From: Oculina patagonica
Lineage: Eukaryota
Direction of reading: 5' to 3'
Length of the DNA stretch: 64,000 nt
Assembly: GCF_052425735.1 (NCBI RefSeq)
Contig: NC_135761.1
Span: forward strand, 8,370,001-8,434,000
Positions 15,705 through 46,142 of the stretch are shown piece by piece. The notes below the pieces were generated by a model, which worked only from the letters and a program-made list of their open reading frames with translations, was not told the DNA's origin and searched no databases. Position 1 is the first letter of the stretch. Each line of letters opens with the position of its first letter. Position numbers and translations under genes: made by a program.

Positions 15705-18700
15705 CTAAAATCCCGAATCATAAATACTCTTGATGTGTCTTGAGTATTTTGTAGGCGCCGTCAGCCAGTTGTTAGCGATCCATTTCTCTCCATTAATGAC
15801 GTCACATCCGCCGTGAAGCGAGTAGCGGTCCACGGATCCTAAAAGACCGCTGTCCGGGTCGATAAAGTTGTTGTACCACATGATGGCGGTGCCTTTCTTG
15901 GGAGGGACAACAAGATTTGCCAGTTGACAGTTTACGCTCAAGTTGAATTCGTCTGTTGTAGCGTTGGGGCTTTCCAGCTCCTGTGTGAACAAGAATTTTG
16001 TTAAACCTGATTTAGGAATTCAAGTTCTCCTAGCTAGAGTGGTTTCACTTGGGTGTCGAAAGTAATTCACGTTTTGCATTACCAACCTCTCAGTGCGATC
16101 AGTTTAAAAAACTCGCCCTAAACTTTCTCAACCAGTCACAAGCAAAACCATTAAGGTCTCCGCACACGTGGGGACAAGAAGGGGTCATGCCGCAGCGACA
16201 TTAAGCAGCGACAAAACATTGTGTTGTTCACACTGAGGGGACATGTAACAGGGACTTGTATCGGGGACATGTAGCAGCAACAAGAACACAATATGTACAC
16301 ATGCAAGAAAATGTAGCGGGGAAATATGTCGCAGCGACACGTCTCCCTCTTGTGTAGAACCTCATTCCTAGGAACAAAATGTGGCAGGAATTCGTGTTTT
16401 CAGGCATGAGCCAAACACAATCAGTACACACAAGGGGGACGTGTCGCTGTGACATGTCCATAGGTCATGTTCCCGCTACATTTCCTTGAGTGTGTACATA
16501 TTGTGATTTTGTTGCTGCTACATGTTCCCGATACACTCCCTGCTTTATGTCCCTTCAGTGTGACCAACACATGATTTTGTCGCTGCTACATGTCGCTGCG
16601 GTATGTCCTTGCGTCTTGTCCCCACGTGTGCAGAGAGCATGGAGACCTTTACTCACTCAAAAAAATCGCTTTCACACGTTTTCCTGCGCTTCGCGCCGGT
16701 TACATGTACAGTTTTTGCTTTGAGTTTGATTGGCTCACTGGATTGTCTGTGTCCTTTGGGATTGGCCAGACTGATTATGCTATTTTTGGCCTGAATGAGT
16801 CTGTGAACTAACTGTGGCTAAAACACTAAACTGAGTAGGTTTTGTTTAAAATATGTCATATGATAGCTCTAGAAAACAGAGGTTTCTTGTCGCGCTTTCA
16901 TTTCCATCAACCGTGAGAGTTGAGTAAGATTGAATTGAGGCGAAAAATTCCTGATGCCTTTGAGCACTGAAATTGGTGTTAGTTATAATCCAGCAACAGT
17001 CATGCAGTTAGACACTTAAGTCGCCTTACAGATCTCTGTATTGCAACGTCTTTAGTGTGAAGTGTTTTGTCAAGGTGATATTTGTTCGCCGGTTTACAAA
17101 TGGCGCACTCGAACTTGTGCGTTAAATCAATAAACTTACTCACCTCTGGTGTGATTGTGGTGTTGTCTGCTATCAGGAAGGCTGTCTCTCCTCCTTCTTC
17201 AACGTCGTTAAGGTAATACAGTATCGTTACAAATCTGTAAATAAAATATTTTGCCAGTTCAAATTGAAGTACTTGTGAATATGGTTGAAAAAACCCCCTC
17301 CAATTTTGGCGATTCACCACCAATATAGAATATAGTAAACGTTTGTTTGTATTGACCAGTTTTTGTTTGTTTGTGCTGTTTCTGGTTTGACTTCGCAATA
17401 GCTAGCTAGCTTTATTTTTTCTTGGAAACTAAAGGAGTTGTTGACAGTCTGTCCCTGATTGAATACAACGGTCGCGTCAAGAAAAAGCGCACATTCACTT
17501 TGTCCCTCCTGTAGGGTTTAAGCTCCGTGTGGATCGTATTTACCTCCATCAATTTTACTTCGTTCATGAAAAATGAATTTGGAATTATTACTGATGGAAT
17601 ATTGCAAAAATTGAAAGCTAATATATATAAGGTTAAGCGCGCGTTCATATATAGTCTGCATGGAATTCTTATAGTAACATAGAAATCTCTAAAGAAATTT
17701 CGTGTGACTGTGTAGCGCATATAACTAGTGAATTGAAAACGATAATTAAAATGAAAAATGCGCTTGATGGAAGTATAATGTTTCCATACGTTTCGGGGCT
17801 ACTGCCCCTTCTTCAGTGGAAAATGTGAATGCCATCTTCAGACACAGGCGGCCCAAGCTCACAATTAGAGGAGTTAAAATATTTAACATAATCTCTTTTG
17901 TAACCGTATGCGAAACGTGACTCTCGACCGGCAGCATATGGAGGTGTTGTGTTACAACGGTTCTCATTTATAAAGGTTTGTATGGGAGAATACGCTTTCG
18001 AATTTATAGCTAAATATAATGAGATTTTGACAATAAAATCAACTTACCTCAATGTCCTGTCGTTATGTCTGTTGTTATCTCGGTTCTCAGGCCGATCCGA
18101 GGCGTTTTAAGCGAGTTATGCAATTTTTGGTTTCCACTGCTAAGAAGAAGTAGCAGTAGACAGGACATTGAGGTAAGTTGATTTTATTGTCAAAATCTCA
18201 TTATATTTAGCTATAAATTCGAAAGCGTATTCTCCCATACAAACCCTTATAAATGAGAACCGTTGTAACACAACACCTCCATATGCTGCCGGTCGAGAGT
18301 CACGTTTCGCATACGGTTACAAAAGAGAATTATGTTAAATATTTTAACTCCTCTAATTGTGAGCTTGGGCCGCCTGTGCTTCAGATAGCAGATGGAATTC
18401 TTATCCCTGGCATTTGCTCACGTCCTGCTTGTGCCGTAATCTCGTTTCCAGAGTCTGTGCGTTTTCCGGTCAGCGGTGACCAAACGCCCAACGGGCAACG
18501 GGTCTGGGCGATTCAAACCAGGAATTCTTGCTCCGGTTTGATTTGGCCGTATTTTGGTGGGCTTTTCAGTCTAGTCCAGAGTTCTCGATTCTTAGTGCTG
18601 ACCAAAAGGATCGCGGACTCTGGGGACGCGATTGCTGGTGCCGCTACGTTTTGCATGCGCATACGTGGATGAGTTAAATCAGTACCTGCACACCCGACAT

Positions 18701-20879: not shown

Positions 20880-23800
20880 AAGGAGGAGGAAAAGGAGGAG
20901 GATTATAAAGAAATAAAATTGCGAGAATGAGCAATCCCCGCCCATCCACACCGCCGCCAAACGGTAGATTGGCGGAGAAGGAGGCAAGTTGTATCTTACT
21001 CACTTTGCATTTTTCCCATGCAACTTTTTTTTAGTCCCCGTATTTTTATGATCCAATTTTTCCTACGGTCTGAGGGGATTTAACATACTTTGATATTGGA
21101 CGATGTTTTTCTTAGCTAAGTAGTACTCACATTCCGGGAACTTCATCCTCCCTCATGAATAGAAGTTTGCGTTTTTGGGCGAAGTGTCTCACCTGAAAAT
21201 AAAGCAATCACACAGGAGTAAACACAAAGAAATCTGGAAGATATGAAAATAGCTAAAAGCCTTATTTTTCGCATGCCAAGCACATGAATGTATTTTGTGT
21301 TTTATATACGTACCTCATTTGCGTCGATAAATCCATCATTATTGACATCCCAAACGAAAAATCCTTTAGCGAATCGCTCATCGTGATCCAGCGTCCAGTT
21401 TCCATCTATAATCAAGTTTAAATAGTAAACATTAAGCTACTTACTCAATTCGGAACTCTGTACCAGAAAGAGTAAAGCGTTTTGTTGAGCCTACTTGCTC
21501 AACATAATTATCTCCCATTTTCGTTGCATCTCGGGCAAATTAAGGCATGGGTCAACAGTTACTTCCCTCAAAAAAAGTGAGGGGGTGGTCTAACTTCTAA
21601 GGCGTTGTTCATTACAACATAAAATTGTAGTTGACAGATGAGTCTCCAACAGTGATGATTTTTTGACATGTCGAAGTTATGCAAATTAGGTCACGTGACT
21701 TAATACGCTAAATAATCGTAGAAAATCTTTAAGCGAAATTGGGAACAGTTTATAGCAAGAGAAATTCAATTTGAATGGTACAAGACAAGTCCTAATAGTA
21801 ACAGCAAGGAAACTGTGCTTGGCAATTATTGAATATTTGATTGATTTTGGAAATAAACAGCTTTTTATACTAGTACCCAGTCTCCCAGTAAAAGTGTTCT
21901 GTCTTTTGTAACGTTTCCTTTGAAATATTTTAACATTTCCAAGCACAGAAACAATGTACCTAATCGCCTTAAAGTTAAAAAACTGACAGCAATTTTAAGG
22001 AAGCAGGAAAAAGTGTTCCCGTTTTACGTAAGGTTTTTTTTGCGCCTTAAGAGGTCACGTGACCTAATTTGCATATTTTAGACATGCTAAAATGAAAACA
22101 ATTGATAATCCATGGTTCTGGGAAAGTTTCATGCTGCTACAACTAAAGCTTCAAGAGAAAGACTACCCCCTCACTTTCTGGGCGAATATCGAGAGGCCCA
22201 TGCCTTAATTTGCTTGAGATGAAGCAACCCTGGTTATCCACAATATGGTTGTCCTTTGAAGCCTAGACCACTAAAAGTCCCTTAGGGTTTTTCTCATGCA
22301 GAGTCAGTCAAGTGAGCGAACGAGCGAGCGACTGCTCGTAGTCTAATTGTAGCCTAATTTTAATCGCACTCCGGCTCCTCACTCTATATTTTTCCTTATT
22401 GTAGCTGCACCTTTCCCCACCCCCGTTCCCGAATTTTGTCGGGGCTACCCTGATAATTCGCGCGTGCTCATTAATATCCAGTCCTGCCGGAGTGGATAGA
22501 AGCACTGTGAGACTAAAGCGTCCCGGTCTGGCCGGCCAAGGACACAACGTAAAAACCCTAGACGTCAAGATGACGGAGGTATAAATGACAACTGTCAGAC
22601 AAGACTCGAGTCGCTGTTGTCATTATTATTTATGAAAAAGCACGTTAATTAGCTCAAAAACGTTTTTACCGGCTTCTCTCATGTCCTCGTCCAAGTCCCC
22701 TTCATACGCGGCTACATCAAAGCCCGCTATACTCATGGCGAGACCGCTTTCCTTTGCCAGTGAAATGACATGCTCACACTCCTCATCAGACAAGAATCGG
22801 GGAATTTCTGTTTTAAAGAAATATCAATTTTGAGTCAAAATTAAAAAAAATTAAAAAAGGACGAATTTGTTTTGTCACAATATAGGACATTTCTTGTCCT
22901 TTCAGATTTTAACTCATGTTATCAAAACATGAAGAAGGCTTTTTAAAGTACAAATATTTGAGTATTCAGAACACTAACACTCATAATAAACAAGCAAAAC
23001 AATTAAGCAAAGAAACAGAGACAATTGTTGAACTGGGTTTTTTGCCTAAGGATACGTTTCTTTTTAAAAAAAAAGATATAAAAAAATTCCAGGTAAAGGG
23101 TATGCGTTTAAACAAATAATTGATGCTTTTTATCAATGCATCTCACCAAATAGCAGAGGCTTCATGGCTCTAGTGATCATCTGATATTTTCTCCCTTCCT
23201 CCAATTCCACCCATCTCACGTGACCAGTCTATAAATAAATAATACCACGAGATCACAAGTTGAAATAGCGTTCTTCTGGTTGTTGCTCAGACGTGCGTGT
23301 GTGTCTTATGTGCGATCATTGCGTACTTGTTAGCAAAAAATTAATTAGATTTTTTATCCCAAAGACTTAGTCATCTAGTTAGTTACAATTATTCCCCGCA
23401 GTGGAGGCAGCTAGTGATGCCATGTCGCCATCTTCTCTCTTCTTCTTCCCATACTACCTTTCGGTCTCGTCGCGTGAACTTTTGTGCTTTTTTTCCGGCA
23501 ACGTTTTTTGAATTAGCTGTATATGAATCAAATCATGCACGCACCGAAAAACGTGATTAAAAAGATAGTTATCAAAGCCTCATAGTGGCTAGGTTAGTGT
23601 CAACATATCGGTAACCAAAATTGATTGCGAATGAAATTAAAAGTGTGTTGGTACAAAGATTACAACATTCAATCACGAAAACTTCTTAATGGTCTAAAAT
23701 GCATTTCGATTTTAATAATTAAGCTTAGAACAATTTACGAAATGAAATAGAGAAAAGAGGCTTTCGAACAGTAGTATTAAGTACATTTTTATCTTTACAT

Positions 23801-26800
23801 GAAAAGGTGTTAAATTATGCAAACAAGGGGTTTTCCTTTTCAATTGCCAAAGTACTAATATATTAACTTAGCATAATTGTGCTAGCCACGTCAAAAAAAG
23901 TGTTAATAATGGTGTACCATAAGTGCCCAAACAAAAAGGAGCTCTGCTTTCTGCTAACCTGAAAAAATGCACTTTAAAATCACTTTGTTCTTTTTTGTTT
24001 ATATCTTGAAGCAGTGTTTATATTATTCCAAGAGAAGGCACAGGTGCAATACACAATTTACCAAGGAATACAGTCGCCTATTGGGTGCCGGACTTCAGAC
24101 CAACGATATAACCTATGATTGCTTTAGGAAACCTCTGGGAAATGGCTGTTATTTTAGAGTACATGCTGCACTTTTCTTGTACGACAAAACTGTTAAAAGG
24201 ATATTATCCAGGACTTTATTTTAACAAGAACTAGCTAAACGTGTGTTACATCACGTTGCATCGAAACCGAAATGAAGTAGAAAACACGACCAATCAGAGT
24301 CCAATGTTGTAACAGCGTAAATAATCATATTTCTAACAATAACTTGAATGGCTTAATAGAGTTTGAATGGTTATTAAATGCATTTTGCTCCGCATGTTAA
24401 GTAAAACACTTGTTAATATTATCAACCAGAGTCAATGGCTTCGGTGAGATCGCTCTCTCTTGAGCTTGCTACGAGGAGCAATGGACTTGTTTGGATTGAA
24501 ACAGTTCTGTTTGCTATCATCAATGTCGCCGCATTCGTTGGAAATCTCTCCGTTTGTTACGCCATGTACAGAAACCAGAGGCTTCGTACGCTTTCCAACA
24601 TGTTTGTTGTAGCGCTGGCTGTCAGCGATATTCTCATGTCCACCTGCTGTATGCCTTTTTCAGTCGCTACTCTAAATCACGGACAGTGGATTTTTGGTGA
24701 AAGTTTTTGTCGATTTCACGGATTTGGAGTGTTAACGTTTGGACTGGCTTCTCTTCACACCATGGGTATAATTGCAGTCAACCGATACTTCTGCGTCGTC
24801 AAACCAGAAAAGTACATCGTGTTCTTTAAAAAGCAGCGAACTTTGATGTATATTGCTGTGGTGTGGTGTGTAGCTTTAATCGGATCTTTACCTCCATTTT
24901 CCTTCGAACACGGTGGATTTGAATTCCAGCCAGGTAAGGCAATGTGTTTGTACACGTTCGATACCAATATCGCTTACACCGTATTTATTGAGTGCGTTTA
25001 CATCGCTACACCCTTAACAGTTATCACAATCTGCTACGCCAAGGTTTTCTACACAGTGTCGCGATCAAATAGAGTTTTCTCATACGAAAATAACCCACAG
25101 CTTCTCAGAGCTAACGTGGAAGAAGCAAAAGTGACCAAGACTTTAGCAGCAGTGATGGTTGGCTTTGCATGCTGTTGGCTTCCGGTTTGTGTCGTCGATT
25201 ACATTGACGCCGCGCGCGGGGAACCCTTGTTGCCGCGACAGGCGTACCTTACATACGGGTTCCTGGTTTACCTGAGTAGCACTATTAACCCCTTCATTTA
25301 TGGGGTAACGAATAGGCAGTTCAGGCGAGAATACAAGGCTATCTTTAGTGGCATGTTCTGTTTAAGATCTAGTCGTTGTACGCCGGGAACTCCGGAAGAT
25401 GTTTCTGGCAGTGAGAGTCAAAGAAAACCAGGGCAGCAAAGCAGAAACCTGGAACTTAGAACAAAAAATCTCGAAATGTCTTAGTATTCTTTAACACATC
25501 GCTTATTAGGTCGTATAGTGTGATCGTCCGGGTGAGAGTAGTTCTGAAAAGAACTGTTGTTGGTGACTGACGTTTCGACAACCTGAGCGGAAGTCATCTT
25601 CAGAGTCAAGTCTTGACTCTCAAGAAGACTTCCCCTGGCTCTGAAGATGACTTCCCTTGATTCTGAAGATGACTTCCCTTGGCTCTAAAGATGACTTCCC
25701 TTGATTCTGAAGATGACTTTCCTTGGCTCTGAAGATGACTTCCCTTGATTCTGAAGATGACTTTCCTTGGCTCTGAAGATGACTTCCCTTGATTCTGAAG
25801 ATGACTTTCCTTGGCTCTGAAGATGACTTCCCTTAGATGACTTTCCTTGGCTCTGAAGATGACTTCCCTTAGATGACTTTCCTTGACTCTGACGATGACT
25901 TCAGTTGACTCTGAAGATGACTTCCCTTGACTCTCAAGAAGACTTCACCCGGCTCTGAAGATGACTTCCCTTGATTCTGAAGATGACTTTCCTTGGCTCT
26001 GAAGATGACTTCCCTTAGATGACTTTCCTTGACTCTGACGATGACTTCACTTGACTCTGAAGATGACTTTCGCTTAGGTTGTCGAAACGTCAGTCACCAA
26101 CAATAGTTCTTCTCAGAACTACTCTCACTAGGACGATCACACTATACGACCCACTGATACTCCTGGGTTCAAACCATTTACTATACATCGCTTATTTTTA
26201 AGTGTTATAACTTATTCTGTGGATGAAACCCCGGGTGTGTCCATTTGAAACGAACCGGTTATGGTACGATTTATCACAGATCTTATCATATGTTATGGTA
26301 TCGTATAAAAGCTGAATTATTAAACGCAAATGAGTTCCGAAGGCTCCCCTTATCGGCATAACAGAAATAAGCCGAATGGTCTGCCAGCACCAAAAACACT
26401 AAATTCCGAAAAGGACATGAACGTGTTCTACACTGCCTGTCCAACCACCTCATTTAGGTCACCTTGTTCGTCAGACCCAGAAAATGCTTCATCGAAGTGA
26501 ATAATATTGATGTTCTTAGCCACCACTTGGTGACAAAGTTCAAAGACGCTCAGAAAAGTGAAAGAAACAAGTAAGCAGTCATTGTGATTACTGGGATGCT
26601 ATCTATCAATAGCTGAACAAAATCTACCCTGAAGATCGCGGCTGATGCAGCTATATGATGACCTTGTTTCCAAACATAGGAAGCCAAACGACGTGATGCA
26701 AATCACACCCGCAACAACGACAACCAAGGTGTTAATTCTTAAGAACACTTATTTCCTCAAAAACTGTGCACCGGAGTGGTATTGGTGTAGGAGTATGAGG

Positions 26801-28746
26801 AAACCAAACAAAACAAAATTGTTTGCAGAGAAGTACGTCTAGTAAGTTAATAACTGTTGATAACTTTACGGTTAAAAATAATAAAACCGTACATGTACAG
26901 ACTGCCAAAGTTTGTTACTTTCTTTGTGTTAGCAGGGGCAGCTGCTTTATTTACTGCTAAAATTTCTTCTTCTGCCAAGGTAGAAAACCGTGGGAGGCAG
27001 AGGGCGAGGGGCAAAGCCCCAAGTTAAATGTAACCTGCTATCAAAAGTCGATAGAATCCGAAAGCATAACCCAATGACAGACTATTAGACAAACTTGCAA
27101 TCTATGTGGCTACGCAAGGGTTGTCTAATTTTCGTTAGCATAACCACACTGACCTACTATTGGTAATCGCGCAATCTGATTGGCTATTGATCCGTAGAAG
27201 GCTCTCGGAGCGCACGCTTAGTCTTCGCTGAATTTTATCAATCAAACCTTCAATAAATCGACTCTAGCTATATTTGTGTTTAATAGATCGGTCAGTGGGT
27301 TATGCTAACACAATAAGACGGCTCGCTCTCGGTTTCTACCGGCTTTTGATAGTTGACTCGGGGCTTCGCCCCTCGCCAACTATCAGCCGATAGAAACCTC
27401 GAGCTCGCCGTCTAATTGTTAAATATACTGCCCTGAGAACGTGCGCAGGTAAAATTGCCAAAAACAACGAAAACTGTAAATAAACCTCTTCCACTGAACG
27501 TTTTGTTGAAGAGATCGGTCTTTGGTTCGTGCTAAAAAATTTATTCTTAAACCAACTGCAAACCTAAATTCCCAACATTGATCAACGTCTAAATTCTTCT
27601 TGTAACATCAATACATTATCAAGCAGACAGGTGATGGAGAACAAAGAGAACAAACGAAAACATCAACTAAACGATACCGAGCTGATGTTATACTAAATTC
27701 TCACAAATAAGTGAAAACCAATGTATGAAAACAGGTAAGGAGAATTTGTATTTCAATTTCAGGCTGAAAGCGGAATTAATTGAATTTGTACTGGTACCTG
27801 GCCTACAAGACAAAGAATAAAGTTACCAATCAAAATTTTCACTCACTGATTTAAATGAAATACTTCCACCGAGGTTATAATACCGGAGTTTTTTTAGCAG
27901 GTATTCACAGCTACTCCAAATTTAGGTCAGGTTCGCGTTTATATTCCTCTACGTATACTATTCTCCCACATTCGGAAATAGTACGGCGTGGCACATTCAA
28001 AATTAAAAGTCACAATATGTATCTGGCTGACATCTGAAAGCGGCAGTTTGTATTAAAATTTTTTGGGAAGGAAAGGGAAACAAGGTAAACTTTCAGTTAC
28101 TAAAATAAATGCTGACCTTAAACTGATACAACATGCCTTCCCTTTCTTTAGTTTGGTCCTGCTTTTATAAACAATTTTAATCAAGCTGGTAGTCATAAAC
28201 ATGCGCGGTGAATATGTACGTCGATTTTCAACGCGCTTAGTAGGTTGTTATTCAAATAAAATCACTGATTTACTCATCCAAAAAATCGATTAGGCCCTCC
28301 TGCAAGAAAAACATGAATCTGTTTTCCCGCTAATACAAAATAAAGAACCATATGCATTTAAAGAACGCGACCTGCAATTATATTTTCCCAAATGTTTTTA
28401 AACTTGGTGATAAACATCGGCTATACCACCGAAATGTGCTGTGTTGGCCTTTCATTGGTTGAACGCCGCTGTAGTTTTGATAACAAGTAGAGGGCCTATC
28501 TAACATATATAGTTATAAATTAAAACTCATAGTCAAAACACTAACCTTGACTCCATCCAGACGCACTAGATTTATTTCATCTCCTCTTGGTTCGTGACAA
28601 GTTTCTATAGGATCCGTACATAAGTTTAGCAGCTCGTCTTCATTAAAGCATGGCTTTGTAAATTTAATGGGTGTCTCTTCAGAATCTTCCGAACTACCAC
28701 AAGCAAGGAAGCAAAACAGAACTACGAGAAAACCTCGAACCTTCAT
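15705..28746 (-). CDS. P4HTM: Transmembrane prolyl 4-hydroxylase-like (P4H-TM) 2OG-Fe(II) dioxygenase with EF-hand; 11 coding exons, 441 aa
   Basis: Exons 28746-28546, 23228-23147, 22807-22670, 21405-21314, 21192-21131, 20693-20656, 20473-20308, 19155-19098, 18807-18686, 17234-17144, 15980-15705; all GT-AG, phases consistent, total 1326 nt. Motifs KPLLFEIPRFLSDEECEHVI, EF-hand DVNNDGFIDANE, HxD in GHYHGHLDS, RFVTILYYLNDVEEGGETAF, SLHGGCDVINGEKWIANNW. Confidence 0.92.
16154..16648. mobile_element. PIF/Harbinger-type MITE
   Basis: TTA on both sides, TIR AGGTCTCC(GCACACGTGGGGACAAG), internal GGGACATGT inverted repeats. Confidence 0.7.
17781..17822 (-). ncRNA. Minimal type I hammerhead ribozyme
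   Basis: Minus strand UUUCCA-CUGAAGA-A-GGGGC(AGUA)GCCCC-GAAA-CG-UA-UGGAAA: perfect stem I (6 bp) and stem II (5 bp), intact core, minimal palindromic stem III, GUA cleavage triplet. Confidence 0.85.
17843..18378. mobile_element. P-element-like foldback MITE with ~220-bp TIRs
   Basis: Near-perfect inverted repeats 17843-18061 / 18159-18378, CACAGG termini, 7-bp TSD CTTCAGA. Confidence 0.85.
18437..18634. mobile_element. MITE related to the 630-708 element
   Basis: TIR TAATCTCGTTTCCAGAGTC versus CAATCGCGTCCCCAGAGTC (reverse complement of right end); TSD CTTGTGCCG / CTGGTGCCG (8 of 9 match). Confidence 0.7.
19640..19959. mobile_element. MITE copy A inserted at the P4HTM intron 7 splice donor
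   Basis: TIR CAYACAGCGGTCAAACGCA; TSD TGGTCTTAC at 19631-19639 and 19960-19968. Confidence 0.85.
19970..20299. mobile_element. MITE copy B, same family in opposite orientation, at the same splice donor
   Basis: Reverse-complement homologue of copy A; TSD GGTCTTACC at 19961-19969 and 20300-20308. Confidence 0.85.
20833..20879. repeat. (ATG)n microsatellite
   Basis: About 15 tandem ATG units in P4HTM intron 5. Confidence 0.9.
21544..22204. mobile_element. Kolobok-like non-autonomous DNA transposon
   Basis: TTAA-GGCATGGG ... CCCATGCC-TTAA; subterminal inverted motifs AAAGTGAGGGGGT and TATGCAAATTAGGTCACGTGAC. Confidence 0.7.
24435..25484 (+). CDS. Intronless class A GPCR, melatonin-receptor-like, nested antisense in P4HTM intron 1
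   Basis: 349-aa ORF with 7 hydrophobic segments; GN, LAVSD, NRY (melatonin-receptor-type variant of DRY), CWLP, NPFIY. Confidence 0.9.
   Translation: MASVRSLSLELATRSNGLVWIETVLFAIINVAAFVGNLSVCYAMYRNQRLRTLSNMFVVALAVSDILMSTCCMPFSVATLNHGQWIFGESFCRFHGFGVLTFGLASLHTMGIIAVNRYFCVVKPEKYIVFFKKQRTLMYIAVVWCVALIGSLPPFSFEHGGFEFQPGKAMCLYTFDTNIAYTVFIECVYIATPLTVITICYAKVFYTVSRSNRVFSYENNPQLLRANVEEAKVTKTLAAVMVGFACCWLPVCVVDYIDAARGEPLLPRQAYLTYGFLVYLSSTINPFIYGVTNRQFRREYKAIFSGMFCLRSSRCTPGTPEDVSGSESQRKPGQQSRNLELRTKNLEMS
25564..25608 (-). ncRNA. Minimal type I hammerhead ribozyme
   Basis: UGACU-CUGAAGA-U-GAC...GUC-GAAA-CG-UC-AGUCA on the minus strand. Confidence 0.8.
25613..26050 (+). repeat. 22-bp tandem repeat (21 units, three shortened to 14 bp) equal to the 5' half of the hammerhead
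   Basis: Unit TTGRYTCTGAAGATGACTTYCC with alternating TTGGCT/TTGATT variants. Confidence 0.9.
26052..26096 (+). ncRNA. Minimal type I hammerhead ribozyme
   Basis: UGACU-CUGAAGA-U-GAC...GUC-GAAA-CG-UC-AGUCA on the plus strand. Confidence 0.8.
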
Positions 28747-29885: not shown

Positions 29886-30380
29886 CTGCAAAATAAAGAC
29901 CCAACTGCAACACGGAAAAGAATAACTTTATTTCTCTTTTTTTCGCGTCTGAACCTTTCTTTCGGGGAGCTTACGCAGAAGTTACTGTTTAAAAGCTCTG
30001 TGATTTGATTATAATAATTGATAATAATAAGTAACCTTTATTTTAGAGTCATTATATTTAGCTTTACAACTTATTAAGAACACGAACAAAAATGTACATA
30101 ACATTGATGATAAAATCTATATAAAAAGAATAAAAAAACTAAGTAGCATTTACATTTTAAAATCTCATTTATGTTTCATGGGCCAGCAGTAACTACCAAC
30201 AGATCAAGGATTAGACAAGTGTGTTCACTGGCTCAATCTCTCTATTTAACAAATTCAAAATGGAGAGTATGTTTCAATAATATCTTACCGTATATTACAG
30301 ATCTACTATACACATTCGGGTCCGCCAACACGGTGAGTTACACTGAGTGAGTTATCATGTGAGTTAACGATGGTGTGAGT

Positions 30381-30590
30381 TGCCAAATCTTGAATTTTCA
30401 ATATTTGTCCTGCCAAATCTTGAAAATTCAACATTTGGCCTGCCAAATATTGAAAATTCAACATTTGGCCTGCCAAATATTGAAAATTCAAGATTTGGCA
30501 GGCCAAATCTTGAAAATTCAACATTCGACCTGCCAAATCTTGAAAATTCAACATTTGGCCTGCCAAATATTGAAAATTCAAGATTTGGCT
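30381..30590. repeat. 30-bp palindromic minisatellite, about 7 units
   Basis: Unit TGCCAAATMTTGAAAATTCAASATTTGGCC. Confidence 0.9.
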
Positions 30591-31862
30591 GGTGAAGTTT
30601 CCTTCTGACACGTTGTTCTGCACGTGGTAATCCTTGTCCGAGAATACACTGTGTTATTTTGGATTTTTCGACATGGCTAAAGAAAACTTTTCTTATGCTC
30701 AGGCACTTAAATGTAACCTTGGTGGCTTTGCAGGTAAGTAACACTGTTTCTGTATTAATATTTGTATTGGCTCGATAGTATTTGAAGGAAGCAAATGTTT
30801 ATCTCCCCATTCTAGCTCGTGACGGAAAATCGAGCAGTTTTACCAGAGCACCGGCGATAAAGATATTGTATGAGAATAGTATCCCAGGCATGTACCGGTA
30901 ACTATGTCGCAGGTAGGTCGGTGGCAAATGAAAACCAGACTTAAAGGGACTATGTCACGGATATTTCGCAGATTTTTGGTCTAAACTGTTCTGAAATTAG
31001 GGGAAGGCAACTTAGCCCATAAAAAAACAGTATCATTGAACATCCAAAGAGAGACATAACCTTAATTTGCGGATAGAAATCAAGCTACGGCTAGAAATAT
31101 CGATTTTTTGAAGACACGCGGAAACAATTTGAAAATGTTAGCCTTACGTTTTCAAATTGCAATTCGTTTTCATCCGAGCCATTCACAGTCAAGGATGCTA
31201 GTTAACAGATTCAGTGCTCTAATAAAGCAATTTTTAAGAAAAATGGACTATGAAAAGACTCGGCCAGGAATACAAAATGTATGTGTCATGGAGCTACAAA
31301 GAAACAAAGATGCAAGGGAAAACACACCGAAATCACAGGTGGCCCAGTCTTTGTAATCGATTTTGGCGATAACGTTACATTTTAAGCCCATTTTAAGACA
31401 ATGAATGAGAATGCTTTGAACCCGGGGCTTTGAAAGCTGCTCTAAATAGTGCTACCTCAGAAAGAAAAACTCGTCTAAATGGTTTTAAACCCACTCCAGA
31501 AGCACAGAAATGTCAACATAACGCAAGACAATACAAGGTACTACATGAGCAATTTTCAAAGCATTCTCATACATGTACATTATCTTATCGGTAGAAAACG
31601 TAACGCAATCGCCAAAATCGCATACGATGCATGGTCCGCCTGTGCCGAAAACAGCACAGTAAGATAATTATTACATACCTCAGACCTCTGTTCCATATTG
31701 CTTGATTAACCTTGATCTTGACAATTTCGCCAATTCAAAAATAAACGCAGTAAAAGCCTCGCAAAGCACCGACAACGATTGAGACAGTCGCGACTAATGC
31801 TATGTTGCGAAATTAAGAATTTTTGAGACGTACGACTGCCGAGTGACGCAATGTCACGCGAT

Positions 31863-32161
31863 CGCCAAATCTTGAAAATTCAAGATTTGGCAGGACAAAT
31901 CTTGAAAATTCAAGATTTGGCTGGACAAATCTTGAAAATTCAAGATTTGGCTGGACAAATATTGAATTTTCAAGATTTGGCTGGACAAATCTTGAATTTT
32001 CAAGATTTGGCAGGACAAATCTTGAAAATTCAAGATTTGGCTGGACAAATATTGAATTTTCAAGATTTGGCTGGACAAATATTGAATTTTCAAGATTTGG
32101 CAGGACAAATCTTGAAAATTCAAGATTTGGCTGGACGAATCTTGAAAATTCAATATTTGGC
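31863..32161. repeat. 30-bp palindromic minisatellite, about 10 units
   Basis: Unit GACAAATCTTGAAAATTCAAGATTTGGCWG. Confidence 0.9.
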
Positions 32162-32857
32162 AACTCACCACTGTTTAACTCACTGACTTAACTCACCACT
32201 GATAACTCGCCCTGTTACCAAACCCACACATTCAGTTTCACTAGATTGTTCGAGGCAATATAATTAGAAAGTTAATTTGACTTTTGAGCAAGGTCACTAC
32301 ACGCATAAATGATAAAATCAACTCACATTCTGCCAATTTTCGCTGCTGTTATTCTAATAAAAAGGGATGTACATCCTTCGATATCAATGACAGTTGAATA
32401 ACCTAGTATATTGTTCAGCCAATCTCGTACCTTGAATCCTAACTCTTTGTATGCTTTTCTAATGTGCAATGTTTTCAAGGATTGTCATGAAAATAAACGG
32501 CCACACCTTTGGATAACAGATGCCAAAATAGGAATGTTGTTTTTTTGAGGTGAAAAAAAATAGATAGTCCTGGTCACAACTGATCGACGACAGCTGACCA
32601 ATCACTGTTTCCGAACTTTAGGCAAGTCTAATATCCAACACGTCAAGGCGAAATTAATTGACCAATCAGAGATCGACATCATCCACTGACAAACGACTTT
32701 ACAGTTGACTCTGATGATAACTTTTGCTAAAGTTGCTAAGTTCAACAGTTCTTTTCAGGAGCTCAACCGGACGATCACGCTACACTTATTACTGATACTC
32801 CCGGAATCAGATCTTTACTGCAAAAGCTCGACTTTTTTAAGTAGTCTTCGCCCGAGC

Positions 32858-33748
32858 TCAGGTTAGCCTTAGTGTATTCTTAACCGCTCGTCGTATTTCT
32901 CCAATTCTCCAGCAATACACAAGTGGATTTAGAAAGGAGTTAATAAAAGCAACAGTTCCCACGTAGTCATAGGCGATTTTTACTTCTAATGTGTACCCGA
33001 TGAATGAGTTCACAAGCATTGTCACACAAAAAGGTAGATAGAAAATCAAAAACAGACCGAAAACATAAAGTACCGTCACAGCAGATTTTCTACACTTGAG
33101 CACGTTTACCGTGTTGATTTGAACGCTCTGCTGTTGTTGACTTATCTGGCGCCGATGTCTGCGAACGATCTGAAATATTTTCAGGTTGCTCAGAGCTGTA
33201 ATAAGAAATGTTAGAAGCAAAATTACAACTGGAATGATTATCCAGTTTCTCAAACAAAACCTCAGCATAACGGCTGTTATAGCAAAGATCCAGAGGCAAA
33301 CAGTGATTTGAAACACGCGAGGAACGGTGACAATCGTGGTGTATCGTAAATGCAGGGTTAAAGCGAGAAGTCGATCGATGAAGACTACGCTTAAAGTTAA
33401 CATAGACACGCCAGACGTTATCCAGCCTGATATGGTCTGAATCATCCTCAAGGCACAGTACACGCTAAAGTCGTTCCCAAGTTCAGCAATCTTGTACGCC
33501 ACGAAAAATGGCTGACAAATCAGTCCAACGAGGAGATCTGAAGCTGCGAGGCAAAACAAAAGGATGAAAGCCGGCGAATGAAGTTCTCGCGTTTTCTGAA
33601 TGACGTGTAGAATGAGAAAATTCCCCATACATGTGACGATAGAAAATATTGAATTGACAACACATGTTACAACGTTAGCCGTTTGCGTCGCTCCCGTTTG
33701 GTCTAAGTTGATGTCTAAAAAGGAACAAGTTAGATGGGTTTTGTTCAT
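32858..33748 (-). CDS. Class A GPCR, melanocortin/adenosine-receptor-like (copy 1, DRL motif)
   Basis: Intronless ORF; conserved start MNKTH at 33748 (in-frame upstream ATG at 33814). GN, LAASD, DRL, FYLP, NPLVY. Confidence 0.88.
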   Translation of the reverse strand: MNKTHLTCSFLDINLDQTGATQTANVVTCVVNSIFSIVTCMGNFLILHVIQKTRELHSPAFILLFCLAASDLLVGLICQPFFVAYKIAELGNDFSVYCALRMIQTISGWITSGVSMLTLSVVFIDRLLALTLHLRYTTIVTVPRVFQITVCLWIFAITAVMLRFCLRNWIIIPVVILLLTFLITALSNLKIFQIVRRHRRQISQQQQSVQINTVNVLKCRKSAVTVLYVFGLFLIFYLPFCVTMLVNSFIGYTLEVKIAYDYVGTVAFINSFLNPLVYCWRIGEIRRAVKNTLRLT

Positions 33749-34939
33749 TGTGAATTGATCAGCTGCCTGTCTGCCAGAAGAGTCGAAAACAATGTCACGA
33801 GTACATCCTAACATATGTCAAAGTGTAACTTGCAACTTCCATATCCCTGCGTTGTGAAAGAGATTGGTCCTCATCGCTGTTTGGTGAACACCTTGTCCTA
33901 CTTTATGCCTCTTCTTTCAATGCTCAAATTAAAATGCGCCAAAAAAGAAAGGGAATCTTATTTGTATGCTTCCTCATTAGGCCATTGTTTAGGTTTCTTA
34001 AACAAATTCTTAATGCTCTACTAAATGGAAGATCAATATATCAGATTCAGTATAAGCTATTTCTTAATTTATAATGCAAGCAGGTGTTTTGTATCGAGTT
34101 TTTTTCCATTTACCAAAGACGTTGCGGTTTATTTTCCTGAAAATCAGAAGTTTTCAGGCATGTTCTCTTTTTTTAACTACACGAACCGCGATGTAAGTCA
34201 AGGGCTTTTGGGTTAACGTGTTAAGGACTGTATAACTAAATACAGTACGAAAGGCTAACCGTCTGAGATCTTAATAACAGAGTTACTCATTTTCTGATTG
34301 CTTTTACCGGAAAAACGCCTGAGGTGATGTTGTCAATTCATTCTGTGTCTGTTGAATACTTTACACAATTAAAAAAATAACATATATAACTTTCGGCATT
34401 TAATGAGGAGGATAAAATGTGACGATATTCTCTCTCCGTTGGATACTTCTTCTAACGCAAATTTGACGATTATTCCAAGTCAGCACACGCGTTCAATATG
34501 AAATGATAGACGGCCAATGAGGCGCCGAATTGGCTTCAGTCAAATGCAATCTCATATCCAACAAGCGCGAGTTAAATAATTGTTTTAGTAAAAACTCAAC
34601 GAAATATTGCTTTATCCCGCTGTTTTTGTATGTGAAGAAAGGCCGGAAAACGGTTTCTGTCGACAATGTTAGTCGGGAATGGTATTAGGGCTGATATCCA
34701 TTGGCCAATCAAAACTCAGGAAATATGTTATCCAATACTCCAGGTTTTACTAACAATTGGTAATCGTAAACGTTGGTTTTCCAGAGTTACTTTCCGATAG
34801 CAAGTACCAGTGAGACTTAAAAGATTTAACCAAACTCATTATGAATACGGTATGGCAAAATGAAGACGGGATATACCGCATTAATTAATCGGCAACCTTT
34901 GAATTTTGACACTAAGAAGAATCATTTGTAATGAGAAAC

Positions 34940-38053: not shown

Positions 38054-38950
38054 TCAGTTTCTCCTCAGTGTATTCTTAACAGCTCGTCGTATTTCTCCAA
38101 TTCTCCAGCAGTACACAAGTGGATTTAAGAAAGAGTTTATAAAAACAACAGTTGTTACGTAGTCATAGGCGATTTTCACTTTTAATGTGTATCCAGTCAA
38201 TGTCTCCACAAACATCGTCACCAAAAATGGAACGTAGAAAATCAAGAACAAACCGTAGACATAAAGTACAGTCACAGCAGATTTTCTACGCTTGAGCACG
38301 TTTACCGTGTTTAATTGAACACATTGCTGTTGCTGACTTATCTGGCGCCGATGTCTTCGAACGATCTGAAATATTTTCAAGGTGCTTAGGGCCGTAACAA
38401 TAAATGTAAGAAGTAGTGTGACCAACGGAACAAAAAGCCACCTACCCCCCATGACACAAAACCTCAACAGAACGCCAGTAAAATTACCGATCCAGAGAAA
38501 AGTAGTGATTTGAAACACTCGAGAAACGGTGACAATCATGGTATACCGTAAATGCAGGGTTAAAGCGAGAAGCTGATCAACAGAGACTAGACTCAAAGTT
38601 AGCAAAGACACGCCAGCCGTCGCCCAGCCACATATGGTCTGAACCATCCTCAAGGTACAATACACGCCAAAGTTGTTTCCAAGTTCAGCTATCTTGTACG
38701 CCACGAAAGATGGTTGACAAATCAGTCCAACGAGGAGATCTGATGCAGCAAGGCAAAACAAAAGGATGAACGACGGCGAATGAAGTTCTCGTGTTTTCCG
38801 GATCACATGTAGAATAACAGAATTCCCAATTAATGTTACCAACGAAAACACTGAATTTAGAATGCAAACCAGAATATTTGCCGTTTGCGTTTCTTTCGTT
38901 TGGTCTAAGTTGATATCCAAAAAGGAACAAGATAGATGTGTTTTGTTCAT
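38054..38950 (-). CDS. Class A GPCR paralog (copy 2, DQL)
   Basis: 298-aa intact ORF with 7TM motifs as in copy 1. Confidence 0.88.
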   Translation of the reverse strand: MNKTHLSCSFLDINLDQTKETQTANILVCILNSVFSLVTLIGNSVILHVIRKTRELHSPSFILLFCLAASDLLVGLICQPSFVAYKIAELGNNFGVYCTLRMVQTICGWATAGVSLLTLSLVSVDQLLALTLHLRYTMIVTVSRVFQITTFLWIGNFTGVLLRFCVMGGRWLFVPLVTLLLTFIVTALSTLKIFQIVRRHRRQISQQQQCVQLNTVNVLKRRKSAVTVLYVYGLFLIFYVPFLVTMFVETLTGYTLKVKIAYDYVTTVVFINSFLNPLVYCWRIGEIRRAVKNTLRRN

Positions 38951-41876: not shown

Positions 41877-42777
41877 TCAGTTTCTCCTCAGTGTATTCTT
41901 TACAGCTCGTCGTATTTCGCCAATTCTCCAGCAATACACAAGAGGGTTTAAGAAAGAGTTAATATAAACAACAGTTGTCACATAGTTATAGGCGATTTTC
42001 AATGTAAATGTGTATCCAAGTATTGTCTCCAAGAAAAGCGTTACACAAAATGGAAAATAGAAAATCAAGAACAAACCATAAACATAAAGTACAGTAATAG
42101 CCGACTTTCTACACTTGAGCACGTTCACTGTGTTTAATTGACCTCTTTGCTGTTGCTGACTTATTTGGCGCCGATGTCTTCGAACGATCTAAAATATTTT
42201 CAAGGTGCTTAGGGCCGTTAAAAGAAATGTACGTAAGAAGCAATGTTACCAACGGAACAAAAAGCCACCTACTCCCCATGTTAAAAAACCTCAACAAAAC
42301 GCCAGTAAAAGTAAGGATCCAGAATAAAACAATGATTTGAAACACTCGAGAAACGGTGACAATTGTGTTATACCGTAAATGCAGGGTTAAAGCGAGAAGC
42401 TGATCAACGGAGACTAGGCTCAAAGTTAATAAAGACACCCCAGACGTCGTCCAGCCGAATATTGTATGAATTATCCTCAAGGAACAGTACACGCTAAAGT
42501 TATTTCCAAGTTCAGCTATCTTGTATGCCACGAAAGATGGCTGACAAATCAGTCCAACGAGGAGATCTGAAGCAGCGAGGCAAAGCAAAAGGATTAACGA
42601 TGGTGAATGAAGTTCTCGCGTTTTCCGGATCACATGTATAATAACAAAATTCCCCAGTAATGTTATCAAAGAAAACACTGAATTAAGAATACATGCCAGA
42701 ATATTTGCCATCTTCGTTTCTTCCGTTTGGTGAAAGTTGATTTTCAAAAAAGAACATGTTAGATGTGTATTGTTCAT
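41877..42777 (-). pseudogene. GPCR paralog pseudogene (copy 3)
   Basis: 901 nt versus 897 nt in copy 2: 4-bp insertion near 42230 (CTTACGTACATTT) and CAG>TAG nonsense codon at 42189-42191. Confidence 0.85.
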
Positions 42778-43509
42778 CGCGAAAAATTACTAGCCGACCA
42801 CAGGAACCTGGTTAAATTTCCAAAAGTGTTACTAACAGTATCGTCTCAAGTCAATCAACATGTGAATGTGCAATTTCGAACCTTCTAGTTCCAATTCAAG
42901 CTTTTGAATGAAAGAAGTCCTTTTTGTTTGTTGATGATAACAGTCGTGCCGAGTGACACTTACTTTAACATTCAAATTGAAATGTGTCGAAAATGATCTA
43001 GTATTTTTATCGAGTGCACAAAGGAAGCAGGTGTTTTGTGTTTAGTTTTGGTTATCTTCTTTTTAGTATCAGGATAAGTTTTTGGGATGTTCTTTCATCT
43101 TAAACCGAAACTTGGACTAATGTTATCTGCATTTTTATCTCGGTTCAATAAGGATTTCTGTAATGAAAAAAAAAAGACCAAAAATAACTAAGAAATAAAG
43201 TAAAACAATTAAAAGCACAACGTTGAGTTTTTTGCTTTTAGCTCTACAGGCTCCTGTTGTGTTCTGTTTATACCAAAATCGTATGTTAAATAGCACGACT
43301 ATTGTTTGAACGAAAGAGATTGAGAACTCCGCAGTTCTGCTTTTAAACGTAAGCTGTTAAAAAGGAAGCCTTAACGAAAAAAACGTATTTGGGCACCAAC
43401 GGGATGCAACCTCTGTGGCCTTTTCAATTCTGGTGCAAACCTGCTACAACTGAATCACTGGGAACACAGTTTGCTAAATATTTCTTTTGTAAAACAAAAC
43501 AAATCTACT

Positions 43510-44521
43510 TCTACCTTCTTACTACCAGTGTGTACAGAAAGCCCACACACACTGATCAATACTTAGCCTAAGACTCACACCATCCACAGTCAGTGAAGCG
43601 TGGTATTGTTAAGTGTCTATATGACCGTGCCAAACACCTCATAACAAAACCATCAGTTATCTCTGAAGAAGAAAAGAAACATTTATCGTCGGTACTTGTT
43701 TCTGACGGATATCCGTCTTCGTTCATACGAAAACTCACTAAGACCACAAGATCAACAGCCAACAACGAACCCACGCAGGAATTTAAATCTACTGCGGTTT
43801 TACCCTACATTAAAGGTGTATCAGAGGTTCTTCGCCGCTGCCTACAACAAAAAGGCGTTCGCACCGTTTTTAAATCTGACACAACTCTTCGGGGTCACTT
43901 AGTGCGACCGAAAGACGTTCTAGAACCAGGTAAACAAGACGGTGTTGTTTATAAAATTCCATTTGAATGCGGCAAAGTATATATAGGTGAAACAGGGAGA
44001 GCAATGCAAGACAGGATGAAAGAACACGACAGAGACATACGGCTTGCTCATACACAAACCTCCGCAGTTTCGGAGCATGCAAACGAAACGGGGCATTTTC
44101 CTTTATGGAATCAAGTCAAGTTTATCGATCGTGACCCTAACCGATCCACACGCAGGGTCAAATAGGCTATACAAATAAGACTTCATCCTAATAACATCAA
44201 TAGAGACAGCGGAATTGAAATTCCTGAAGCATGGATACCTACGATCAGAAAACACAACAGCCGTTCAACAACAAAGCGGACCTCTGAGGGAACATCATCT
44301 GTTAGTCGAAATAATAACGAGGATCGAAATGCACCAATCACAGCGAACCAACGTGCATAAATAGCAACACGTAAACAATCGACCTCATCGCCTGATGAAG
44401 ACTAGTAGTATTGCAGTCGAAACGTCGCGATCAACATCTCAAAGCGATTCTATCGTGAGACAAACGAATAAACGTTTATTCCTATCTTACACCACGATGA
44501 ACAATATTCACATCTTTAATG
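43510..44521 (+). mobile_element. 5'-truncated Penelope-like retroelement (RT C-terminus, GIY-YIG endonuclease, pseudo-LTR)
   Basis: VYRKPTHTDQYL*DSHHP, AVLPYIKGVSE, GVVYKIPFECGKVYIGETGR; in-frame stops at 43569 and 44163; 16-bp TSD ACAAAACAAATCTACT at 43494-43509 and 44522-44537; empty site in the paralogous flank near 39680. Confidence 0.92.
44387..44431 (+). ncRNA. Minimal type I hammerhead ribozyme in the Penelope pseudo-LTR
   Basis: AUCGC-CUGAUGA-A-GACU(11 nt)AGUC-GAAA-CG-UC-GCGAU. Confidence 0.85.
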
Positions 44522-45239: not shown

Positions 45240-46142
45240 TCACGCCGAGTTTTTTCTCAGTACATTCTTTACAGCCCGTCGTATTTCTCCAATTCTCCAG
45301 CAGTACACAAGTGGATTTAGGAATGAGTTTATATAAACAACAGTTGTCACGTAGTCATATGCGATTTTCAATGTTAATGTGTATCCCGTTAATGTCTCCA
45401 CGAAAACCGTAACACAAAATGGAAAGTAGAAAATCAAAAACAAACCGTAGACATAAAGTACAGTCACAGCAGATTTTCTACACTTGAGCACGTTCACTGT
45501 GTTGATTTGAACAATTTGACGTTGCTGACATATCTGTCGCCGATGTCTTCGAACGATTTGAAATATTTTCATGGTGCTTAGGGCCGTAACGAGAAATGTA
45601 AGAAGTAGTGTTACCAACGGTACAAAAAGCCAGCTATAGTTACTCATTGAAAACCTTAACAGAACGCAAATTATGCAACCGATCCAGAGGAAAGCAGTTA
45701 TTTGAAACACGCGAGAAACGGTGACAATCGTGTTATACCGTAAATGTAGGGTTAAAGCGAGAAGCTGGTCAATGAAGACTAGACTCAATGTTAATAAAGA
45801 CACCCCAGACGTCGTCCAGCCGAATATTGTATGAATCATCCTCAAGGTACAATACACGCAAAAGTTGTTTCCAAGTTCAGCTATCTTGTATGCCACGAAA
45901 GATGGCTGACATATCAGTCCAACGAGGAGATCTGAAGCAGCAAGGCAAAACAAAAGGATAAACGACGGCGAGTGAAGTTCTCGCGTTTTTCGGATCGGAT
46001 GTAAAATAAGAGAATTCCCCATTAATGTTATCAAAGAAAACATTGAATTTAGAATGCAAACCAGAATATTTGCAGTTTGCGTTTCTCCCGTTTGGTCTAA
46101 GTTGATTTTCAAAAAGAAACAAGTCAGATGTGTTTTGTTCAT
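45240..46142 (-). CDS. Class A GPCR paralog (copy 4, DQL)
   Basis: 300-aa intact ORF. Confidence 0.88.
   Translation of the reverse strand: MNKTHLTCFFLKINLDQTGETQTANILVCILNSMFSLITLMGNSLILHPIRKTRELHSPSFILLFCLAASDLLVGLICQPSFVAYKIAELGNNFCVYCTLRMIHTIFGWTTSGVSLLTLSLVFIDQLLALTLHLRYNTIVTVSRVFQITAFLWIGCIICVLLRFSMSNYSWLFVPLVTLLLTFLVTALSTMKIFQIVRRHRRQICQQRQIVQINTVNVLKCRKSAVTVLYVYGLFLIFYFPFCVTVFVETLTGYTLTLKIAYDYVTTVVYINSFLNPLVYCWRIGEIRRAVKNVLRKNSA

Follow-up and report, generated by a model that had tools for sequence, protein, structure and literature searches.

The window analyzed here, a 64,000-nucleotide stretch of the 529-Mb Oculina patagonica genome (contig C4, positions 8370001-8434000), contains a canonical Penelope-like element (PLE) insertion within which a 22-bp minisatellite in all likelihood grew later, by DNA slippage and unequal exchange, the resulting array of hammerhead halves being a by-product rather than a ribozyme device. 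The interpretation of this locus as a PLE insertion with opposed hammerheads, given in an earlier note on the same DNA, is right, and insertions of this kind are already known.

The insertion and its element family

The segment 25508-26184 is bracketed by a perfect 12-bp direct repeat (identical, unstranded 12-mers at 25496-25507 and 26185-26196), which marks it as one insertion, the repeat being its target-site duplication. Three parts can be distinguished, namely, an inverted, 5'-truncated PLE copy without a tail on the minus strand (25508-25611, approximately positions 1498-1602 of L007, the copy on which family positions are numbered, all family comparisons having been made copy by copy, without a consensus); the minisatellite of 21 units on the plus strand (25612-26049), delineated by tandem-repeat and unit comparison; and a direct, 5'-truncated copy on the plus strand (26050-26184, family positions ~1499-1634), which alone carries the PLE tail, about 33 nt added at the 3' end (26152-26184). 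The similarity of the direct copy to the family extends a few bases leftward into the last array unit. The inverted arms (25509-25611 and 26049-26151) are 103 nt each, 94% complementary and separated by 437 nt. A subfamily variant at 26150 is common to both arms and is found in only 4 of 29 other copies; together with the bracketing target-site duplication, this variant assigns the arms to a single event. Thus, 25508-26184 is shown to be one PLE insertion event that comprises a tail-less inverted copy and a tailed direct copy. The left arm is 98-99% identical to other family copies, with one private difference, and the right arm with its tail (26049-26184) has six private differences from the 29 other copies, four of which are C-to-T changes, none at CpG; the numbers are small, and the six-to-one disparity is not statistically compelling. 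A tail of 30-40 bp at one end and an adjacent inverted 5'-truncated copy are standard PLE anatomy (PMC8557442, PMC11167929), and the earlier description of an insertion with an inverted 5'-truncated copy and a 33-nt one-sided tail agrees with the published accounts (PMC8557442, PMC11167929, PMC4209133).

The right arm is not a chance sequence but the 3' terminus of a highly abundant repeat (1368 first-look candidates genome-wide); the 40 of these candidates that were scored are ~95% identical to it. Copies of the family share a fixed 3' end and begin at many different positions, that is, show variable 5' truncation. Many of them have an inverted copy directly upstream that stops ~32 nt short of the 3' end, with direct copies ending at ~1634 and inverted copies at ~1602, so that the tail is present at one end only. 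Two long copies, L052 and L084, contain single open reading frames (ORFs) of 619 and 830 aa, respectively, in which a reverse transcriptase domain (RVT_1, 31.6-32.4 bits, cut-off 29.6) is followed by a GIY-YIG domain that scores just under the Pfam cut-off (18.9-22.2 bits against 22.6), and on contig C1322 a pseudo-LTR arises from a truncated copy placed in tandem ahead of a full copy, the open frame of which is 843 codons long. The family is a canonical, high-copy EN+ PLE that encodes a reverse transcriptase followed by a GIY-YIG endonuclease. It shares with the Penelope/Poseidon-type EN+ PLEs the order of the two domains in one ORF, the pseudo-LTR derived from a tandem copy, 5' truncation, the adjacent inverted copy, the one-sided tail of ~33 nt and the hammerhead in the terminal repeat, and differs from them in nothing essential, only the private central 22-bp array in the window being unusual.

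In the hammerhead, A9, the extra U and G10.1 together constitute the first ATG of the ORF (in L084, C1322:6500-11957, minus strand; the corresponding positions in the window are 26064-26066 in the right arm and 25594-25596 in the left arm). Therefore, the last ~136 nt of one unit of the element serve as the 5' UTR and the first 41 codons of the next unit, and this terminal segment, tail included, encodes the first 41 residues of the 830-aa reverse transcriptase/GIY-YIG protein. In the right arm in the window, a C-to-T change converts codon 5 into a stop codon. The same arrangement, with the start codon at the beginning of stem II, has been described for PAc, an element of the anole (PMC11167929).

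Several other features of the family were observed. At C1:46983021-46999980, five matches to the 5' edge of the family hammerhead are regularly spaced at ~4.23 kb, pointing to five or more long units arranged in tandem; this spacing is greater than the 2.69-kb hammerhead-to-hammerhead unit on C1322. The 3' UTR of the family carries its own 34-bp repeat in 2-2.5 copies. A 6-bp hairpin located just 3' of the hammerhead (26103-26122 on the plus strand and 25538-25557 on the minus strand of the window) is conserved in the family and weakly resembles the histone 3' stem-loop (Rfam, 20.5 bits and E 0.03, short of the gathering score); perhaps it serves as a recognition element close to the start sites of reverse transcription. 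Six copies (L005, L007, L019, L020, L027 and L030) abut short microsatellites 3' of the element end, at approximately locus positions 1635-1685. An insertion bias of PLEs toward microsatellites has been reported, and the 3' flanks of these copies are in line with it.

The two hammerheads

As stated in the earlier note, two opposed, complete PLE-type minimal hammerheads flank the 21 units, and all features of this type are present in both. The minus-strand hammerhead in the left arm (25564-25608, C17 at 25569) is identical in sequence to those of other family copies. The plus-strand hammerhead in the right arm (26052-26096, C17 at 26091) carries two C-to-T changes, one in loop 2 and the other in stem II, where a C-G pair is replaced by U-G. 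Both contain the CUGAAGA box, one extra U, G10.1 and C11.1, the GAAA box, the palindromic ACGU, C17 and a 5-bp stem I. Accordingly, every feature listed for PLE minimal hammerheads (PMC4209133) is found here, namely, CUGANGA, GAAA, C17, the extra nucleotide between 9 and 10.1, the G10.1-C11.1 pair and the palindromic 15.2-16.2 segment; the published ribozymes have no helix III beyond the palindromic ACGU and a helix I of 4-5 bp. By these sequence features, the hammerheads of the insertion belong to the PLE minimal-hammerhead class. The minimal metazoan PLE hammerheads (Cervera & De la Pena 2014) resemble them in the core boxes, the nucleotide inserted after A9, G10.1-C11.1, the absence of helix III beyond ACGU, the 5-bp helix I and the frequent occurrence of opposite-strand pairs 100-700 bp apart, but helix II in the window is broken by two U-U mismatches. 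In the family, stem II consists of five standard pairs around these mismatches and is the weakest among the sampled hits, and the lowest-energy predicted fold of the right-arm hammerhead is in a shifted register that uses up G8 and A9.

A genome-wide search with a hammerhead descriptor yielded 2159 matches, compared to 2 for the reversed control. Among 20 diverse matches from different repeat families, the stem II sequences differ in a compensatory manner, and stem I has on average 3.45 contiguous pairs as against 0.85 when partners are swapped among loci, with none of 5000 swaps reaching 3.45. The motif class is real, given this excess over the control, the compensatory changes in stem II and the stem I swap test; the compensatory support spans families of the genome, variation within the young family in the window being too limited to contribute. 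The Rfam covariance models produced no hammerhead match at E<=1 within 24000-28000. Hammerhead models in Rfam expect helix III. The other Rfam matches in this region were weak and below threshold, comprising the hairpin with its histone stem-loop likeness and, within the array, snoRNA-like matches that were dismissed as chance.

Structure and origin of the array

The array consists of 21 tandem units, 18 of 22 nt and three of 14 nt, and the right-hand hammerhead contributes its 5' half as what would be the 22nd. The source of the unit is family positions 1499-1520, which encompass the 5' strand of stem I, CUGAAGA, and the start codon with the 5' strand of stem II. Each unit thus also holds the start codon of the element, and none contains the GAAA box, the 3' strand of stem II or the cleavage site. 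A recount confirmed that CTGANGA is retained in 15 of the 21 units. We also considered an ORF running through the array and rejected it because no ORF of at least 70 aa is found there and the 22-nt period shifts the frame.

The array is found at this locus only. A pattern of two adjacent units, with three free positions and up to two mismatches, has 12 matches in the 529-Mb genome, all of them inside the array in the window. The 29 other family copies, fetched with 1.5 kb of flank, each contain exactly one unit, that of the hammerhead itself, and no tandem repeat of it. Four other loci (L043, C1:33056943; L044, C5:8614853; L045, C6:470057; L046, C6:34239104) show the same head-to-head architecture of one tailed and one tail-less copy, with the junction at family positions 1496-1501. 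These are independent insertions with their own flanks and with central spacers of 0-9 nt, two of the four displaying their own target-site duplications of 12-14 bp, and the center of L043 is identical to that in the window. None of the four contains an array, which with the 29 other copies makes 0 of 33 family copies examined, and 11 head-to-head hammerhead pairs of other PLE families likewise have no central array (0/11). Other pseudo-LTRs with the 22-bp array, which the earlier note proposed to look for, were thus not detected in the genome search, and by that note's own reasoning, an array confined to this locus is a local slippage product.

The internal order of the array points in the same direction. 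None of the 22 units is identical to family positions 1499-1520, each being one to three changes away. The units alternate between two derived forms (shuffling the unit order reproduces the similarity at lag 2 in only 6 of 20000 trials), and superimposed on this alternation is a duplicated block of about seven units (the block similarity at lag 15 is matched by 90 of 20000 such shuffles). In particular, the sequences of units 12-14 recur unchanged as units 19-21, unit 15 has its counterpart in unit 22, and each of units 1-3 is a single difference away from its partner among units 16-18. Units 5-6, 7-8 and 9-10 are three identical, consecutive 44-bp dimers (25700-25831), while the arms differ by 6%. 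The units nearest to the family sequence are at the block edges, and homogenized variants occupy the interior. Such nesting of re-copied, mutated blocks requires several successive rounds of copying of the units, as in the evolution of minisatellites by slippage and unequal exchange, and reiterated copying of a single RNA segment would not produce it. Being a locus-specific tandem array with higher-order structure, the array is, on its sequence, a one-off minisatellite private to this locus.

The alternative that we weighed most closely is that the PLE reverse transcriptase built or seeded the array at integration, by repeatedly re-copying the 22 nt nearest the 5' end of its template; repeated template jumping was the explanation offered in the earlier note. 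The reverse transcriptase of PLEs is the sister of telomerase reverse transcriptase. The array begins exactly at the junction of the inverted and direct copies, at least five independent insertions have this junction within family positions 1496-1501, and PLE integration is known to produce complex tandem and inverted structures (PMC8557442), all of which is compatible with such an origin. However, even two adjacent units are absent from every other family copy examined; direct copies of one segment, the mark of reiterative reverse transcription, are not seen, no unit being equal to the template (0/22); and the alternating variants and duplicated mutated blocks call for several rounds of DNA copying. 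Furthermore, the short homologies that are apparent from the sequence (TGACT and CTT) would yield periods of 12-17 nt rather than 22, and the junction is not a sharp hotspot given that similarity to the family is broken by a foreign base just before position 1499 in 17 copies, before 1496 in 16 and before 1502 in 9. We therefore regard the construction or seeding of the array by the reverse transcriptase as unlikely, and template jumping as the builder of the array is not borne out by its confinement to one locus, the absence of a unit identical to the template and the nested duplication of mutated blocks. A combined scenario, in which the reverse transcriptase made the first tandem copies in a telomerase-like manner and DNA-level turnover subsequently reshaped the array, appears a little less probable still; the reverse transcriptase could nevertheless have made the first duplication, a point that counts against the explanation we favor. 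The short copies at L043-L046 may have arisen by run-off at the 5' end of a transcript that starts just upstream of the hammerhead.

Misassembly of a repeat beside a palindrome is very unlikely to account even in part for the length or the internal order of the array. The number of units comes from one assembly, and tandem and inverted PLE structures are known to trouble assemblies (PMC8557442), but the units are distinguished by many variants and show an ordered higher-order structure, and at 437 bp the array is well within long-read length.

Under the favored explanation, that is, PLE insertion followed by growth of a minisatellite, a single integration placed the last ~136 nt of the element 12 bp behind the stop codon of a G protein-coupled receptor (GPCR) gene and, in the same event, generated the adjacent inverted tail-less copy, yielding a near-perfect palindrome of ~240 bp, as at the four other loci. 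The first 22 nt of the direct copy, at the palindrome center, would then have been duplicated at the DNA level, and the array would have been enlarged stepwise by replication slippage and unequal exchange, with point changes and an 8-bp deletion arising in single units and with the 44-bp dimers and the block of about seven units being re-copied afterwards. We infer from the structure of the array alone that this growth followed the insertion. The unstable palindrome center presumably favored the first duplications and might have promoted further growth.

Among known systems, the closest parallel to the array is with minisatellites born from transposable elements, which similarly show a short unit, higher-order periodicity, a homogenized interior with more ancestral edges, and restriction to a single locus; the difference is that the seed in the window is at the center of a retroelement palindrome and happens to be half of a ribozyme. 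The animal non-LTR retrozymes also involve tandem repetition of PLE-derived sequence with hammerhead letters, but their units of ~170-400 nt each contain a complete ribozyme and occur at many loci, whereas the units in the window are 22 nt long, incomplete and present at one locus. Accordingly, we rejected a non-LTR retrozyme, given the 22-nt units without GAAA or a cleavage site at a single locus.

Genomic context, RNA folding and significance

The gene upstream of the insertion is an intact, intronless ORF for a rhodopsin-family GPCR of 349 aa (24435-25484, plus strand; full-length match to the Pfam 7tm_1 profile, E 9.9e-52). Its stop codon, TAG, occupies 25482-25484, and the insertion starts 24 bp on, at 25508, as given in the earlier note. 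No AATAAA or ATTAAA is present between the stop codon and 26319, so the 3' UTR of this gene, if it is expressed, most likely runs through the insertion. On the minus strand, a P4HTM-like gene has its last exon at 15708-16019 (match to the human P4H-TM structure 6TP5, E 6.5e-17), an EF-hand exon and further colinear exons up to 22629-22823, identified by exon-by-exon search, and a candidate first exon that encodes a signal/anchor sequence at 28516-28746. A genome-wide Pfam search for the P4H domain missed this gene, the exons of which are split. Given this layout, the insertion and the receptor gene are probably located in the first intron of the P4HTM-like gene, and the earlier placement of the minus-strand hammerhead in its pre-mRNA is consistent with the exon matches. 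Elsewhere in the window, four paralogous intronless 7TM receptor genes of another subfamily are encoded on the minus strand (32858-33814, 38054-38950, 41877-42777 and 45240-46142), the third of which, divided between two overlapping open frames, is probably broken. At 43389-44165 (plus strand), a fragment of another PLE has a GIY-YIG-type motif in a 190-aa ORF, preceded by a reverse transcriptase-end motif. Minisatellites are common in this stretch; in particular, two related ones with units of ~30 bp, open in several frames on both strands, are located at 30306-30744 and 31813-32186.

A further reading is that the array is a functional RNA device, in which multiple hammerhead 5' halves would compete or cooperate for the single 3' half or the left arm and thereby modulate how the GPCR 3' UTR or the P4HTM intron is cleaved. 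The CUGANGA box retained in 15 units, the variant stem I strands that can still pair through G-U and the probable inclusion of the element in the GPCR 3' UTR, with no poly(A) signal before 26319, are all in keeping with this possibility. Nevertheless, we consider it extremely improbable. The units contain no GAAA box, stem II 3' strand or cleavage site, and the earlier suggestion of many enzyme halves for one substrate half founders on the first two of these absences: such a unit only substitutes for the cognate 5' half and adds nothing, and, to judge from the layout of the repeat, the units lying in between would then form an oversized loop 2. Each strand has one cleavage site and each transcript a single complete hammerhead; hammerheads of this kind require a dimer, single ones showing no cleavage in vitro and dimers cleaving only weakly (PMC4209133). 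The wobble pairing of UGGCU and UGAUU carries no weight because A-to-G and C-to-T changes in the 5' strand always preserve pairing, and, as the earlier note conceded, its retention is what transitions give by chance. In the predicted fold of 25496-26196 (-249.9 kcal/mol, z -12.5), the arms are paired end to end over the hammerhead, so that the ribozyme is predicted to be buried, in agreement with the earlier suggestion that the inverted arms may sequester both ribozymes. Finally, the array occurs only once and shows no sign of conservation. Growth of a minisatellite as a by-product of the insertion accordingly remains the preferred reading, and the array probably does nothing specific.

The value of the outcome is chiefly that of a clear negative result: what looked like a striking array of ribozyme halves is an ordinary minisatellite within a known type of retroelement insertion. 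If, conversely, the reverse transcriptase made the first copies, the closest relatives of telomerase would have left at this locus a natural record of their repeat-addition activity. As a minisatellite, the locus offers a dated example of the birth of a satellite at the center of a retroelement palindrome and a candidate polymorphic marker beside a receptor gene, and the well-defined PLE family with a start codon inside the hammerhead is useful for studies of PLE integration in corals.
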